Below are positions 17,001 through 23,000 of a DNA stretch of 64,000 bases, piece by piece. The notes beneath the pieces are model-generated. The model ran no database searches and was not told where the DNA came from. It saw only the letters and a list, made by a program, of their open reading frames with translations. Position numbers and translations under genes: made by a program. This DNA comes from Haliotis cracherodii (lineage: Eukaryota), in contig NW_027266275.1 in the NCBI RefSeq assembly GCF_022045235.1, positions 79,608,001 through 79,672,000 of the forward strand, given 5' to 3'. Positions within the stretch are counted from its first letter, which is position 1. Every line of letters begins with the position of its first letter.

Positions 17001-20000
17001 AAACAGGGCATCATACAAGGGGCACACAGGACACGGGGCATCATACAAGGGGCACACAGGGCATCATACGAGGGGCACACAGGACACGGGGCATCATACA
17101 AGGGGCACACAGGACATGGGGCATCATACAAGGGGCACACAGGAAACAGGGCATCATACAAGGGGCACACAGGAAACAGGGCATTATACAAGGGGCAAAC
17201 AGGACACGGGACATCATACAAGGGGCACACAGGAAACAGGGCGTCATACAAGGGGCACACAGGAAACAGGGCATCATACAAGGGGCACACAGGAAACAGG
17301 GCATCATACAAGGGGCACACAGGACACGGGGCATCATACAAGGGGCACACAGGGCATCATACGAGGGGCACACAGGACACGGGGCATCATACAAGGGGCA
17401 CACAGGACACGGGGCATTTTACAAGGGGCACACAGGAAACAGGGCATCATACAAGGGGCACACAGGACACAGGGCATCATACAAGGGGCACGCAGGACAC
17501 AGGGTAGGATACAAGGGCACACAGAACACGGTAGATACAAGGGGTACGCAGAACAGGGTAGATACAAGGGGCACGCAGAACACGGTAGATACAAGGGGCA
17601 CGCAGGACACGGTAGGTACAAGGGGCACGCAGGATACGATAGATACAAGGGGCACGCAGGACACGGTAGGTACAAGAGGCACGCAGAACACGGTAGATAC
17701 AAGGGGCACGCAGAACACGGTAGATACAAGGGGCACGCAGGACACGGTAGGTACAAGGGGCACGCAGGACACGATAGATACAAGGGGCACGCAGGACACG
17801 GTAGGTACAAGAGGCACGCAGAACACGGTAGATACAAGGGGCACGCAGAACACGGTAGGTACAAGAGGCACGCAGGACACGGTAGGTACAAGGGGCACGC
17901 AGAACACGGTAGGTACAAGAAGCACGCAGAACACGGTAGATACAAGGGGCACGCAGAACACGGTAGGTACAAGGGGCACGCAGAACACACGGTAGATACA
18001 AGGGGCACGCAGGACACGGTAGGTACAAGGGGCACGCAGAACACAGGGTAGATACAAGGTGCACGCAGAACACGGTAGATACAAGGGGCACGCAGGACAC
18101 GGTAGGTACAAGGGGCACGCAGAACACAGGGTAGATACAAGGGGCACGCAGAACACGGTAGATACAAGGGGCACGCAGAACACGGTAGATACAAGGGGCA
18201 CGCAGAACACGGTAGATACAAGGGGCACGCAGAACACGGTAGATACAAGGGGCACGCAGGACACAGGGTAGATACAAGGAACAACCTGCTGAAAACTGAT
18301 GGATCGGGTTATGCCAATGAGGCATCTGACAAAATGGCTATCAAACTGAAATCCCAGCACCCGACATGAACCAGGGAGCATGCGTCTCATCAACATTCAG
18401 TTGTGATGGCAAACACACCCAGGTCAGAACAGTCAGTGATTCTGCCTCCCCTCGGAAGTATGAGTCTAATAAAACTGATTTTAGCCAGTATGCTGGGTTC
18501 ATAAAAGTCCATATCTTAACAAGTTAACTTGCAAGTGATGCCAAGAGACAATTTTGTGTGAGTTGATTCCAAAACTGTTTGGCTCAGGCTGCAAAATAAA
18601 TGACATATAGCTTCTTACTGCTGTTCTAAACAATTACCTTGGCAACTGATATTTCAGCAACTACAGTGTATTCACTAAACGTGCTGGTGCCCATGAAGTG
18701 GTAGAGTTGCTTCCCCTTACAAGTGAACCGGGACGTACCATCGGGCATTACACCAGCACCTTGAGTAGATCTGAAACATATTCCAAATATTGAATGTTAG
18801 ATCAAACTTCTCTACAGGACTAGACATAGACACTTGTCTGTTACTCCGACACTCGTGAAAATCTGTAAGGATGGCTTGTTTTCTAGACTTCTTCCAAAAT
18901 ATTGTTACATTGAACTATGTCTATAGTGAACAGGCTTATAACAAACTGACTTTTTAGGCCCCGGCCATTTGCTGTATATTTTCTCATATTAAATTGATGG
19001 ATATAACAAACACATACAGCATACTCACTTAGTGGTCCTGTGTGCTCTCTGTCAATGACGTTTTTGTTTATAACGAATTGTTATTGTCTGAACTGCTGAG
19101 CTGCTCATGTGTCACCAATCAGCTTTAGACATCGACGTTAAGTTTCAAATCAAAGATTAATTGCAGATGAACACGGCATCCCCAAATGTAATACATATAG
19201 AATACTAAACGAGCTCCCGTGTAATACCAATTTTATGAAACGAGTGAATAGTTCTGGTATCTGACGAGCGAAAGCGAGTCAGATACCACAACTATTCACG
19301 AGTTTCATAAAATTGGTTTTACACGGGAGCGAGTTTAGTATTTTATTTATTACTTGCCATTTACAACGTTTTTAGAATTATACTGTTGAGTATGAATAGG
19401 CTAGCTGACACCTACACGATCCACGGCAAAGTCCAATTGAGTTTAACAGAATAATACTTCAAACACGTCAAAAGTTGAAAGGTATGAATTTAATACCATA
19501 CAACGGTCCATCTTTAGAATTCACAAAATTATCGTAGGGCTAAGACATTCGCAACTCACATACTTTAACTTAGACTAACGACTGTCGTTGCGCTACAATA
19601 CGATCGCCTTGTGGAACGGGCCTTGTACCTCAAACCTTACAATAACGTCACAATACCCGATGACGTAATTTGTGGAATTTTGTTGCAAGACCCATCGGCG
19701 AAACAATGCCTAGTGACGTCACCCTAGCAACAAGGTTGCTGGGGTCATCGAGTGTGCTTAAGCTCCTCTCAGTGATCTATCAACTCCACACGCAATGTCT
19801 TTGAATAAGCCAAGAGATGTCGAGAGCTTACAATATTTGTTCGTGAAACGTGTTCCGAGAGTACACAAGCACGCGTTTTGGTATTACACAATGTGTAATA
19901 CAGCTGTATGTTTATTAAACGGGTGATCTCTTCACGGGCAAGTAATAAATAAACAATGCACACTTGTGTTACTTATCAAATGACATTATGCAACCATGTG

Positions 20001-23000
20001 ACTTGATCCAAGATGTCTGACAGTCGAAAAACACTTATAATGAAACTAAAATTAGTGTTCTGTTTGAGTTTGTTACAACCGTAGTTAACTGTATGTCAAG
20101 TAATACCACTGGCCTAAAGGGGCACCTCATGGTGTTCTCACCTGTCTGACAATAGTACTTTACAATAGTACTTTACAACTGTAGGTGTTTTGTCGCAGTA
20201 CAGTAACATTCAGGTCAGTTTTTCAGATTCATCATGGCGTGTTAACTTTATGTGCGACGTAGAACGTTCCACACATGACAATGAGCAAAGGCATGATGCC
20301 CACACACCAAGACTCAACATTTTGTTTATCTGGGATTCAAACCCATGATCAGCACATCCTGTCATGGCAAGTGACCTAACTCCTCACCTCAGACGACTCA
20401 GCCACAGTTTAACAAGGATACCCCACTCCAACAACATAGTTTGGATTTTAATTTTTCAAATACATTATATTAAGATCAGGAAGCATCATGTTGTCTTTAC
20501 CTTTGATTGAAAGAATAGAAATAATCATTTGAAATAAGCTAGTTTTCAAGTGTAAAACTAGTGTATCGTGATACACAGCAAGAACATGGCAACACATACA
20601 GAATCTCACCCGAGTGTCTTTTGATATCAAATATATCAACACGAGTTGATAAAAGTGGAAAAATCCAAGGCTTGCCGAGGATTTTTGCCACTTTTATCAA
20701 CGAGTGTTGATATATTTGATATCAAAAGACACGAGGGTGAGATTTTATTTATCATCCAACATCATTCTTTCAACTTTTTCAATTTGTAGACAGTAATTAG
20801 CAGTGTCTTCAGTGTAAAAAGTACTGCAAACAGCTTCAGTAGCAGAGCCATTAGTGATGTCATTTGATTGTGATGTCATGGTAACCAGTGATGTCACAAT
20901 GGTCTGCAAAGCATTGTGATGTAATTTCATTGCAGCGATATCTACAGTGTAGATATCGCTTGATCTCATCCAAGTGATATCTCCTGTGGGAGCCAGTTTT
21001 GGATGATAAATGTCTTTAGGATATTGTGCAAAAGATTTAATGTTTCAGCCATTTTTGAATTTACCTTATCTTGGAGCACAGATTGGTCTTGGTGCTTTTG
21101 CAGAACTTGCAGTCATAGCACTGAGGGATGTAGCACGGGATAACATGGTCGCCTGAAACACCGCACAGAAAACACTGTAGTGCCGCTTCTGGGATCGTCA
21201 TTGTTGGTTGGTTGATTTGTTGTTTAACGCCGCACTCAGCAATATTCCAGCTATATGAAGGCGGTCTGTAAATAATCGAGTCTGGACCAGCAATCCAGTG
21301 ATTAATATCATGAACATCGATCCACGCAATTGGGATTGATGACATGCATCAACCAAGTCAGCGAGCCTGACCACCCAATCCCGTTAGTCGCCTTTTACGA
21401 CAAGCATAGTCACTTTTTACGGCAAGCATGAGTTGCTGAAGACCTATTCTACCCCGGAATCTTCACGGGTCCTGGGATCTTCATGATTGTATACATTTTT
21501 CAAACGATTAAATCATGGCTACGCTGTAATGAAAACAATTAACATTCCAAGCAGTGATCATCTGGTGCTTGGGGTTTTCAGATCAGTGGGGTTTATTGTC
21601 AATGGGGGAACTACACCTCCATCATGTTCATGTCAGGTGAACACTGAACAAACTGTCCAATCTAAATGAAGACTGCGTGGGTTCGCAAGCCTATCATATG
21701 TAAACTTTCAAAAACGATTTGGTTTCATATCTTTACAGTCTGACCTAAAAATATCCATAAGAACATATTATATGCCTAGATTTCTTCAAAGACAACACTC
21801 TTATAATATTTAATTTGAGAGTATTGTGGTCACTGGTCATTGTCGCACATGAGCAGATACTAGTACCTGGATAAGTGCAGTATATAAATGTATAATATAT
21901 TAATAATTAACAAACCATGTCAAATAATTTATGTTGTAATGATTCACTGAATATAACAAATAATATTTAAGCTGCTTATTAATATTCGTATTCGTTACCC
22001 TATATTCGTTATACGAATCGTATTTGCCTCATAGTGTATTTGTTGCAGTCCTAGAACATATCCACAAGGATATCATGGCACAACCTCAATGATCTACATT
22101 TAGGACTGGTTATTTTATTCAATGTTGACAGAGCTACAGATTAACAGCGTACTAGCGTAAGATACCTCCCACCAAAAAATATTCAAAACCCAATTACTTT
22201 CAATTAACTATGCACAGAAACGCATGCATTAAATGAAAAGCTCAAATGTATAAAAACAGCTCGTGTAAATACTCAATGAAGCTTTTTCAGCATGCCTACA
22301 AAGAAGCTTATTTCCGAAACACAATTACTAGCTAATTTACTTTCCGGGTCAAGCCTATATTTTTAGAACAGTTATACACATCTAAAACATTATTTCATTT
22401 GTTTTAAATCTTAAAATGTTCACTAATTTGGGAAAAAACCCAATAGAGTGATGACTAGATGAGTGAAAAAATATTGGTTACCCAATGAAAAATGTAATAA
22501 CCCAATTAAAATAGAAACTCTAGAGCAAAGATTCGATTGCTCAAAAAGTTATCTGGAGTTCTGGTTGAGGTACAGAAATCAGGGAAGCAAGTGTGAATGC
22601 TTGGCTCACTAGCACTGAGACTTTTGAAGCCTTGATGCTGATGGGCTGATCAGACAGTATTCAGGCAGGGAAACAGCAAGTATCATCTCTTAAATTTTTT
22701 TGGCATAATGCAGCAGGGAAATTGAACCACCAACCTTCCCCTCTCTGGTCAGACACTACACTTTCCGGTCAGACCCTCTTTCCACTAGACTATGGAGGCG
22801 GTCTGTAGCAATGAGGAACAATCCCTATGAGAGCTCACCTGGCTTCACAGTCGTGACTCCTTCACCCACACTCTCTACTATTCCTCCACCCTCGTGGCCG
22901 AGGACAACCGGGAACAGTCCCTCCGGGTCGAACCCGTCCAGTGTGTAGGCATCTGTATGGCACACTCCAGTAGCAAGAACCTGACCAAACAAGTACAACG

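Follow-up and report, generated by a model that had tools for sequence, protein, structure and literature searches.

A terminal hairpin with apparent strand-marking CGAG blocks in two probable Helentron-type transposon families of Haliotis cracherodii

The stretch of Haliotis cracherodii DNA analysed here (the window, 64,000 nucleotides) contains two elements, B and C, each with a terminal hairpin in which the tetranucleotide CGAG faces another CGAG instead of its complement. The question is what kind of element carries such a hairpin and what the blocks might be for. A first-pass annotation, made from the letters of the sequence, had placed CGAG against CGAG in both elements at left-arm offsets of +15, +46 and +70, in hairpins of ~150 nt with ~73-nt arms (mismatches included) and with the apex loops C-GAAA-G in B and G-CTTG-C in C. 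These coordinates, motifs, sizes and loops are correct (Table 1), and an ungapped inverted-repeat search gives arms of 69 nt for B and 62 nt for C. As to the spans that it assigned, 19195-19950 for B and 20596-21011 for C, both elements are present, but flank divergence and nested insertions put the real ends of B at 19196 and 19949, and C starts at 20597. The A at 19195 is host flank and, judging from the nested insertions, part of the target; in B copies the flanking sequence diverges immediately before the terminal motif. The A at 20596 is also host flank. All of the motif positions in C stand, but at 20666 the CAAG reflects a CpG-to-CpA change private to this copy, the C family consensus being CGAG. 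The B consensus also holds two single mismatches, T.T at +30 and C.C at +59. The conventional orientation of B is the minus strand, which puts the hairpin at the 3' end.

Table 1. Positions of elements B and C and of their parts, numbered from the first letter of the window
Feature	Position	Strand	Remarks
Element B, probable non-autonomous Helentron/HLE2-type element (HINE)	19196..19949	-	boundaries in 30 genomic copies
B terminal motif TATAGAAT (family-wide TAKAGRAT)	19196..19203	+	kept across six families, alignment A1
B hairpin	19197..19346	+	arms 19197-19269 and 19274-19346, GAAA loop 19270-19273
B block 1, CGAG	19210..19213	+	opposite CGAG 19330-19333
B block 2, CGAG	19241..19244	+	opposite CGAG 19299-19302
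B apex CGAG-C-GAAA-G-CGAG, block 3 and GNNA-type loop	19265..19278	+	right CGAG at 19275
B subterminal inverted repeat TTATTACTTGCC	19347..19358	+	abuts hairpin; inverted repeat I3
B terminal inverted repeat GGCAAGTAATA and A-run	19937..19949	+	2-3 A among copies
Second, older B copy	41885..42645	-	92% identical; block 1 'perfected' to CTCG/CGAG
Element C, probable second HINE-type family, ~415 bp	20597..21011	-	946 exact hairpin termini in genome
C hairpin	20602..20744	+	CTTG loop 20671-20674, apex G-CTTG-C
C blocks, CGAG	20611/20732; 20642/20701; 20666/20676	+	20666 is CAAG here, CGAG in consensus
C subterminal inverted repeat TTTATCATCCAA	20748..20759	+	complementary to 20999-21010
C terminal inverted repeat TTGGATGATAAA(T)	20999..21011	+	

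Both elements have a pair of short inverted repeats that is conserved in the family copies. In B, TTATTACTTGCC (19347-19358) pairs with GGCAAGTAATAA (19937-19948), and just 12 nt of the subterminal repeat are common to the copies; in C, TTTATCATCCAA pairs with TTGGATGATAAA (20999-21010). The B apex recurs unchanged in a third family of the same genome, D, and in a metagenome relative (L128), and blocks 2 and 3 have decayed in the older B copy of the window (CAAG, TGAG, CGAC).

B and C are young, high-copy, non-coding families. Exact hairpin termini number 488 for B, 946 for C and 370 for D and are present on all of the large contigs, copies are 99-100% identical, and no ORF of at least 75 aa was found in B or C. 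Copies of B nested in C can be compared with empty sites; three such copies, representing two independent sites, show no target duplication. One empty site reads GTAGATA^TCGC (L018 and L047, two overlapping sequences from a single locus) and the other TCTGCA^AAGC (L023). A host T always borders the 3' end on the minus strand; at the 5' end the neighbouring base is T in one empty site and A in the other. Flanks are A/T-rich across 30 copies, and an A/T run of variable length occurs at one element end. Among B subfamilies the ends vary less than the body. This is true of the distal end, which played no part in choosing the copies; the choice does bias the low diversity seen in the hairpin itself.

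We consider it probable, at about 0.6, that B and C are non-autonomous rolling-circle transposons of the Helentron/HLE2 type (HINEs) with a selected hairpin as end signal. Their closest known counterparts are HINE-Mo, DINE-1 and the oyster Cg_HINE (PMC4067079, PMC7492417, PMC11417382). B and C share with these elements a short inverted repeat of ~12 nt at the 5' terminus and subterminally on the 3' side, a stem-loop distal to the 3' repeat (in B and C it starts 1-5 nt past the inner repeat and extends to the terminus), T-runs of variable length at the boundary, T/A-rich insertion without target duplication, a non-coding sequence dispersed in many copies, and Helentron ORFs in the genome. However, published HINEs have 3' palindromes with stems of 5-10 bp and a 3' repeat 38-60 bp away from the terminus, whereas the stem-loops of B and C are ~150 nt with 73-nt arms. 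Unlike HINEs, one of the two B empty sites is A^T and not T^T, and neither B nor C has central tandem repeats or a microsatellite. We found no mention of CGAG/CGAG blocks with stable tetraloops in the three HINE papers cited above.

Canonical Helitrons such as Helraiser also resemble B and C in their rolling-circle transposition, in a hairpin near the 3' end that is followed by a host T and in the lack of target duplication; the Helraiser-type hairpin is thought to act on the displaced single strand (PMC5876387). HLE1 elements start with 5'-TC, end with CTRR-3', have a 16-20 nt palindrome ~11 bp from the end and lack terminal inverted repeats (PMC4067079). B and C show none of the first three and have terminal inverted repeats instead, with minus-strand ends TTTATTAC…ATTCTATA and plus-strand ends TATAGAAT…GTAATAAA, and a canonical Helitron was rejected. 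Assignment to an Rfam RNA family was rejected as well, the best matches being generic long miRNA-precursor models with 60 and 56 bits against gathering scores of 200 and 119. Cryptons, which had been an early guess, use a tyrosine recombinase, are not known to have terminal inverted repeats or a terminal hairpin and are flanked by short direct repeats at the junction; B and C have inverted repeats and a terminal stem-loop and lack the junction repeat, and the guess was not supported.

The hairpin geometry is not due to chance, because the six-CGAG arrangement, for which a genome-wide search had been suggested, occurs 260 times versus 0 for the reversed control, and a looser design pattern occurs 1122 times versus 0. 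The spacing is less strict than was claimed: it is 31 bp and then 23-26 bp, depending on the family, and the outer block is missing in family D. Block 1 is a Watson-Crick pair in D, which is highly successful, and so the outer block is dispensable. Among six family representatives, 17/17 two-by-two internal loops read GA/GA, set within CGAG, on one strand, and left and right CGAG copies are exactly opposite in stem register in the same proportion. Where the stems leave Watson-Crick pairing, they do so in invariant CGAG/CGAG blocks. Counts of CGAG and CTCG in the six families are 6/0, 6/0, 5/1, 6/0, 6/0 and 6/1, where three families were recovered by a pattern demanding all six CGAG and so do not bear on how often the blocks occur, and where shared ancestry means that block conservation does not equal six independent events. 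B-type left termini read CGAG in 488 cases and CTCG in 40, some of the latter perhaps being right arms with a T-to-C change. The CpG inside CGAG mutates in decayed copies, yet CGAG is intact in every family consensus. Other long palindromes of the same genome (L042 and L026) are perfect.

The proposal that shape is kept while the arm sequence diverges is borne out by covariation across the six families. The B and C consensus sequences have 58 positions that are Watson-Crick paired in both; 29 of these are identical and 29 have changed on both sides. When 11 hairpins from the six families are compared, 48/59 stem pairs have changed on both sides, 96.9% of the cells are paired and the covariation score is 0.754, versus 0.21 for shuffles and 0.05-0.17 for slid controls. 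D belongs to the same genome as B and C, and related hairpins with different arms, but with the same inverted-repeat layout, are present in metagenome contigs from other organisms. Selection for the hairpin shape, with strand asymmetry, is supported by these sequence comparisons.

Predicted DNA folds of the B and C hairpins have energies of -59 to -61 kcal/mol (z ~ -20 versus shuffles). The implication that only one strand folds finds no support: the stems between blocks are 20-29 bp long, and the two strands have near-equal energies in the standard DNA energy model (-59.1 versus -59.6 and -61.5 versus -60.3 kcal/mol), for which the ViennaRNA DNA parameters handle the CGAG internal loop generically. 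Therefore, the blocks are unnecessary for folding. In family D the CGAG strand folds better by 4 kcal/mol. On the CGAG strand, G.T pairs outnumber A.C by ~6 to 1 in the six family representatives, and the apex loops across families, GAAA, CTTG and TTTA, are documented stable DNA loops; GAAA is a GNNA tetraloop (PMC10085684), and CTTG and TTTA are type II tetraloops. By NMR, the CGAG block in DNA hairpins consists of C:G, sheared G:A, A:G and G:C pairs (PMC10085684). The B and C blocks match it in sequence and register, with the pyrimidine-GA-purine context, and their sheared G.A pairs are putative. The hairpins studied there come from the AUTS2 promoter and have the identical antiparallel CGAG/CGAG, also with a GAAA loop; however, they are consecutive blocks in a human promoter repeat tract, whereas B and C have single blocks 23-31 bp apart, set in long Watson-Crick stems at a transposon end and with a predicted geometry. 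The complement strand has pyrimidine bubbles, A.C mismatches and ordinary loops at the same positions. Since each deviation from Watson-Crick pairs on the CGAG strand is harmless or stabilising in DNA, we infer that selection acts on the fold of this strand.

B and C, lacking an ORF, would have to be moved in trans by a Rep-helicase(-endonuclease), and the earlier suggestion of an enzyme supplied in trans is plausible, since intact Helentron transposase genes are present in the genome. Stop-free ORFs of 2600-3200 aa (at least 16) align end to end with protein P0001, which has the Pfam domains DUF6570, Helitron_like_N, PIF1 and Exo_endo_phos. The intact ORFs carry DUF6570, an HLE2 marker (PMC11417382), and Helitron_like_N, and PIF1 and Exo_endo_phos are assigned by full-length alignment to P0001. 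Near the ORF copies, with 19 of 2536 candidate ORF pieces scored, no B, C, D or general-design hairpin terminus was found within 20 kb on contigs C1 and C2, none of 66 rarer-family hairpins was near any scored copy, and no autonomous element with a B/C-type hairpin was found among the checkable ones. Presumably the partner of B and C is some Helentron of this genome.

Read on the minus strand, B and C each begin with a short T-run and the 12-nt terminal inverted repeat, followed by the non-coding body, the complementary subterminal repeat and then the HLE2-defining stem-loop, grown to ~150 nt, and end in the conserved motif …ATTCTMTA before a host T. We propose that the hairpin marks the element end in cis and does so as a folded single strand of DNA; B and C presumably pass through a single-stranded DNA intermediate. 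The arms would be free to vary as long as pairing holds, with two or three CGAG/CGAG blocks and the apex retained. The blocks break the two-fold symmetry of the palindrome, making strands and arms non-equivalent, and would serve in strand and orientation recognition by the transposase, presumably through Rep. The hairpins of attC sites and of the IS200/IS605 family (IS608) also have divergent sequences and a conserved single-stranded DNA structure, in which unpaired or mismatched features set strand and orientation. B and C resemble them in principle only, in that structure is conserved and sequence is not. The enzymes and hosts differ, attC being used by the tyrosine recombinase IntI in bacteria and IS608 by the single-domain HUH TnpA, and the features there are extrahelical bases and bulges, where B and C have putative tandem G.A pairs.

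A more specific version, which we put forward tentatively, is that the CGAG blocks and the stable apex form a strand-selection code, the transposase reading, on a folded single strand, sheared tandem G.A pairs that lie at fixed distances from the element end. It would use the complement of the strand conventionally called 'top', with the giant hairpin at the 5' (initiation) end, where hairpin and adjacent inverted repeat would be a landing pad that aligns both ends for circle closure. The HLE2 convention counts against reading the CGAG strand, as it assigns the 3' hairpin to the CTCG strand. In Helraiser, only the top strand, which has the 3' hairpin, is cut and joined, with the hairpin as terminator (PMC5876387), and by this convention and analogy the processed strand would read CTCG, not CGAG.

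The same class of element might accordingly have its functional fold on the conventional top strand (the minus strand of the window), with CTCG/CTCG pyrimidine bubbles as flexible kinks or flipped-base recognition points for the transposase, comparable to the unpaired features of integron attC sites. This is rather unlikely in our view, although, besides Helraiser, the host T that always follows the hairpin end on the minus strand and the near-equal predicted stability of the strands would favour it. On that strand the G.T wobbles turn into A.C mismatches, and the loops TTTC, CAAG and TAAA are not among the known stable motifs, unlike every CGAG-strand loop. Moreover, in HLE2-reverse elements the position of the stem-loop relative to the ORF is not fixed (PMC11417382).

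It is improbable that CGAG is instead a double-stranded iteron, six direct copies of which would bind a protein one way without any single-strand structure. All six CGAG lie on one strand and would give a symmetric palindrome a direction. Rolling-circle Rep proteins of viruses and plasmids do have direct iterons beside hairpins. However, duplex binding does not require copies that are exactly opposed in the stem, only four bases are conserved while their flanks covary as stem pairs, and spacings of 31, 23-26 and 10 bp keep no single helical face. Just as improbable are blocks with no recognition role, that is, interruptions inherited since they limit cruciform extrusion, cleavage or slippage, or by mere descent. 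Long perfect palindromes are unstable in genomes, the terminal motif common to the families makes a single ancestor probable, and block 1 can be lost, but L042 and L026 are perfect, any mismatch would do and GA/AG alone is seen, B and C have come to differ at about half of their stem positions with the blocks identical in sequence and register, and the fast-decaying CpG of CGAG persists in every consensus. That the hairpin acts as RNA, as a small-RNA precursor or structured transcript, is scarcely credible. RNA too is stabilised by tandem G.A, GNRA and G(CUUG)C motifs, and the miRNA-precursor models do match weakly, but far under gathering. UUUA is unremarkable as an RNA loop, but TTTA has been documented as a loop in DNA, and the hairpin lies exactly at a transposon terminus beside an inverted repeat, as one would expect of a DNA signal.

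In conclusion, the hairpin of these probable Helentron-type elements looks, from its sequence, like a strand-marking signal that is new for the Helentron group as described. If the strand-selection code is true, it would offer the first mechanistic insight into how Helentron ends are recognised and would parallel, in eukaryotes, the structural recognition of attC or IS608 type.

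In the window, the hairpins of the non-coding elements B and C are real and non-random: direct reading, a repeat finder and a position-by-position script agree that CGAG in the left arm faces CGAG in the right arm. The CGAG copies lie at offsets +15, +46, +70, +80, +104/105 and +135/136 from ATAYAGAAT in both elements, and each facing pair gives C:G, G.A, A.G and G:C. We refer to these as blocks 1 (outer), 2 (middle) and 3 (apex side). At the apex, B reads C-GAAA-G and C reads G-CTTG-C; the B consensus also has single T.T and C.C mismatches. Folded as single-stranded DNA, the hairpins reach -59 to -61 kcal/mol (z about -20). 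The third block of C had been read as CAAG; this is correct for the window copy (position 20666) but private to it, as the C family consensus is CGAG. The spacing had also been called periodic, which is too strong, since it is 31 bp and then 23-26 bp.

The window also holds a second, older B copy (92% identical). Its left arm reads CTCG at block 1, which makes a perfect Watson-Crick pair, and from the sequence this double change looks like a hairpin-templated (quasi-palindrome) correction. Its other blocks show CpG decay (CAAG, TGAG and CGAC).

Coordinates of hairpins, elements, junctions and candidate transposase genes (C numbers are contigs of the window genome, G000; L numbers are loci or contigs)
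Feature	Position	Strand	Remarks
B hairpin	19197-19346	plus	arms ~73 nt; direct reading of 18900-21300, repeat finder, position-by-position script
C hairpin	20602-20744	plus	arms ~73 nt; direct reading, repeat finder, position-by-position script
Second B copy	41885-42645	minus	window
Family E copy	G000:C10:28629844-28629968		
Head-to-tail junctions	L017:2252-2275; C1:57013742/57014156; C1:69817314/69817728; C1:4196717/4197094		C1 cases from coordinates
Stop-free Helentron-type ORFs, 2600-3200 aa	C9:22242724-22250160 (plus); C80:26785214-26792677 (minus); C78:49759072-49766451 (minus); C23:43100633-43108015 (plus); at least 12 more. Intact candidates likewise at C1:42840200-42847315 (plus) and, divergent, at C22:1699851 (plus)		DUF6570-Rep-PIF1-endonuclease by alignment to P0001
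Other long palindromes	L042:494-664; L026:3021-3166		window genome
Second hairpin on the family F contig	L132:953-1086		metagenome
E-like element	L159:1856-4490		metagenome

The two hairpins are parts of repeat families that are very young and dispersed through the 1.18-Gb genome. BLAST gives over 2000 candidates for B and over 1400 for C, the top ones being 99-100% identical, and exact 22-24-nt hairpin termini occur 488 times for B and 946 times for C. A third family, D, was detected adjoining a B copy (L017); its exact termini number 370, and 40 or more of its copies are identical over 177 nt. Copies of these non-autonomous families that are 100% identical mean recent or ongoing activity. 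A fourth family, E (apex CGAG-CTTTAG-CGAG), has a single copy in the genome, about 90% identical to E-like hairpins of four metagenome contigs from elsewhere. Rarer families are represented by 66 candidate pattern matches, known by count and coordinates only.

Element boundaries were set by alignment of family copies. On the plus strand a host A immediately precedes the element, whose first bases are TATAGAAT in B and TAGAGAAT in C and D. The hairpin is next in order, and immediately behind it stands a 12-nt repeat (B, TTATTACTTGCC; C, TTTATCATCCAA). The body beyond this repeat is non-coding, and the element closes with the complementary repeat and an A-run of variable length. B and C contain no ORFs of 75 aa or more. 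B has inserted into C precisely and without target duplication at two sites, GTAGATA^TCGC (L018 and L047, overlapping segments of one locus) and TCTGCA^AAGC (L023), both of which served as empty-site controls; the nested B elements have the same orientation as their host C element. Between B subfamilies the distal terminus, which was unused in copy selection, is far more conserved than the body; the low diversity of the B hairpin itself is biased by the choice of copies. Truncated copies were sought to tell which end initiates and which terminates; nearly all of the sampled C copies were full length. Elements of different families also meet at head-to-tail junctions (B-D, C-B and C-D), the distal end …GTAATAA of one lying against the hairpin terminus ATAGAGAAT… of the other. 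These junctions could reflect either a distal end that resembles the preferred target (ATAAA^) or read-through composites.

By this end architecture, B and C read on the minus strand have the layout of HINEs, the non-autonomous Helentrons (HLE2). Such elements (HINEs, DINE-1-like) have a 5' terminal repeat and a 3' subterminal repeat followed by a stem-loop, together with variable-length T-runs, T-rich targets and no target duplication (PMC4067079, PMC7492417, PMC11417382). HINE/HLE2 is the closest family, and B and C agree with it in repeats, stem-loop, target behavior and non-coding nature. However, their stem-loop is about 150 nt, whereas published HINE/HLE2 stems are 5-10 bp. Canonical Helitrons (HLE1) are ruled out because B and C have no TC or CTRR end. 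The Crypton-like class, which the first-pass annotation suspected, is ruled out by the end architecture, which is that of Helentron/HLE2 and unlike the Crypton expectation. The element class is already known, and the new features are the size of the stem-loop and the conserved CGAG blocks. No mention of the oversized stem-loop or of the CGAG blocks was found in the Helentron papers or a full-text literature search, with the repeat libraries Repbase and Dfam outside its scope (PMC4067079, PMC7492417, PMC11417382). Rfam returned only sub-threshold matches to generic hairpin models.

The proposal that shape is conserved while arm sequence diverges is borne out by covariation over six families. 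In an alignment of 11 hairpins, with pairs counted on the consensus structure, standard pairs fill 96.9% of the cells (67% in shuffles) and in 48 of the 59 pairs both partners have changed. The covariation score reaches 0.754; shuffles give 0.21 and slid controls 0.05-0.17. Between B and the C consensus 29 pairs are unchanged, 29 are doubly changed and none is singly changed. The stem therefore persists through turnover of its sequence; the CGAG columns are invariant.

In six family representatives, all 17 two-by-two internal loops have GA facing GA within CGAG, on the same strand throughout, and the CGAG/CTCG counts are 6/0, 6/0, 5/1, 6/0, 6/0 and 6/1. One could regard the CGAG copies as direct repeats bound in the duplex. 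However, the left and right copies are in exact stem register in every case, which argues for a structural module. The "CGAG block" (C:G, sheared G:A, A:G, G:C) is known from NMR to be stable in DNA hairpins, also in combination with a GAAA loop (PMC10085684). CGAG contains a CpG, and decayed copies, such as the window C copy and the second B copy, read CAAG or TGAG; only 260 copies in the genome retain all six CGAG. That the blocks are nevertheless intact in every family consensus points to selection in the source copies. Block 1 is dispensable, because a normal Watson-Crick pair replaces it in D, a very successful family, and because B-type termini read CTCG there in 40 cases versus 488 with CGAG. 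Of the 40, the one that was read, the window's second B copy, is a true "perfected" block; some of the others may be right arms in which one T has changed to C. No family seen lacks block 2 or block 3. Three families came from a pattern that required the blocks, and so breadth is shown rather than frequency. Two other long palindromes of this genome (L042 and L026) have essentially perfect arms and no CGAG blocks, and so long perfect palindromes do persist here.

The claim of stabilization on one strand only was overstated: both strands fold, as 20-29 bp of stem separate the blocks, and they do so with nearly equal energies (ViennaRNA, DNA parameters); the comparison gives no useful strand difference since the model has no G.A term. 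The exceptions to Watson-Crick pairing are nevertheless one-sided. On the CGAG strand they are the sheared-G.A blocks and G.T wobbles (about six versus a single A.C), with apex loops GAAA, CTTG (twice) and TTTA. GAAA is a GNNA-type loop (PMC10085684); CTTG and TTTA are type II DNA tetraloops. At the same positions the complement has T.C/C.T bubbles, A.C mismatches and the loops TTTC, CAAG and TAAA. This one-sided pattern favors the CGAG strand as the selected fold, by roughly 3 to 1. In attC and IS608 hairpins, which are similar in principle, unpaired features set the strand choice. Helraiser cuts and joins the top strand only (PMC5876387), and "HLE2-reverse" elements carry their stem-loop at the opposite side of the ORF (PMC11417382). 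The top strand of B and C reads CTCG, so the Helraiser precedent is awkward for the CGAG-strand reading. To our knowledge no Helentron has been tested experimentally; given this and the existence of HLE2-reverse elements, either polarity may hold.

Relatives of the design occur elsewhere. A scan of public metagenome contigs for the six-CGAG geometry gave 70 loci, of which six are true palindromes and the others GC-rich chance matches. The six are four members of the E-like family, a D/B-like hairpin with all three blocks (L128) and a new family, F (L132). All have a shared terminal motif (TAGAGAAT or TAGAGGAT) and the hairpin-then-repeat layout, and the matching distal repeat is present wherever the contig is long enough. 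As a negative control, bacterial and archaeal genomes gave only GC-rich, non-palindromic chance matches to the six-block pattern (palindromicity 0.32-0.47). The family F contig has another hairpin of about 135 nt with the tip CGAG-GCGAAGC-CGAG, other internal loops in its stem and different flanks, and is perhaps a remote relation of the design. The GCGAAGC of its tip is known as a hyperstable DNA mini-hairpin and adds to the stable tips on the CGAG strand. One E-like element (L159, about 2.6 kb) has a 664-aa reverse-transcriptase ORF (RVT_1, E 3e-37) on the opposite strand between hairpin and distal repeat, either a nested retroelement or a captured fragment.

A candidate transposase is present in the window genome, where Helitron_like_N matches lie within open frames of 2600-3200 aa. 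One such frame carries DUF6570 as well, a marker that distinguishes HLE2 from HLE1 (PMC11417382), and its closest protein relatives have the Helentron architecture (OTU)-DUF6570-Rep-PIF1-Exo_endo_phos. At least 16 genomic copies align stop-free to residues 18-2521 of one of these relatives (P0001), which suggests that an autonomous lineage is currently active. Intact Helentron transposase genes therefore coexist with very recently active non-autonomous families, and it is possible that this transposase is the enzyme for B and C. B, C and D sequences were absent from the 30 Rep loci examined, and coordinates place no B, C, D or general-design hairpin termini within 20 kb of four ORF copies on C1 and C2. 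Likewise, no scored ORF has any of the 66 rarer-family matches nearby (19 of 2536 candidate ORF pieces were scored). Viral contigs had neither the hairpins nor Helentron relatives, and the hairpin-bearing metagenome contigs had no Helentron ORF.

We envisage that in the single strand the terminal repeat would pair with the subterminal repeat and that the hairpin would stack beside this duplex, bringing both element ends side by side as a natural cut-and-join substrate for an HUH tyrosine nuclease. The blocks and loop would give a fast, stable and directional fold, and might be read directly by the transposase or by accessory single-strand-binding proteins. We know of no Helentron (HLE2) that has been reconstituted.

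In sum, the first-pass annotation was partly right: shape selection is supported, whereas the Crypton guess and single-strand-only stabilization are not. The structural feature is worth a bench test. This genome unites stop-free Helentron genes, 100%-identical non-autonomous copies and an end signal with few explicit conserved features (the 8-mer at the terminus, a stable loop and CGAG blocks, two to three in number), and so direct tests are possible. Should the transposase recognize the blocks as sheared G.A pairs, this would be a rare case of a non-canonical DNA pair motif with a role in biological recognition; otherwise B and C, with their clear boundaries and oversized HLE2 stem-loop, would still be a useful example for mollusc transposon annotation.
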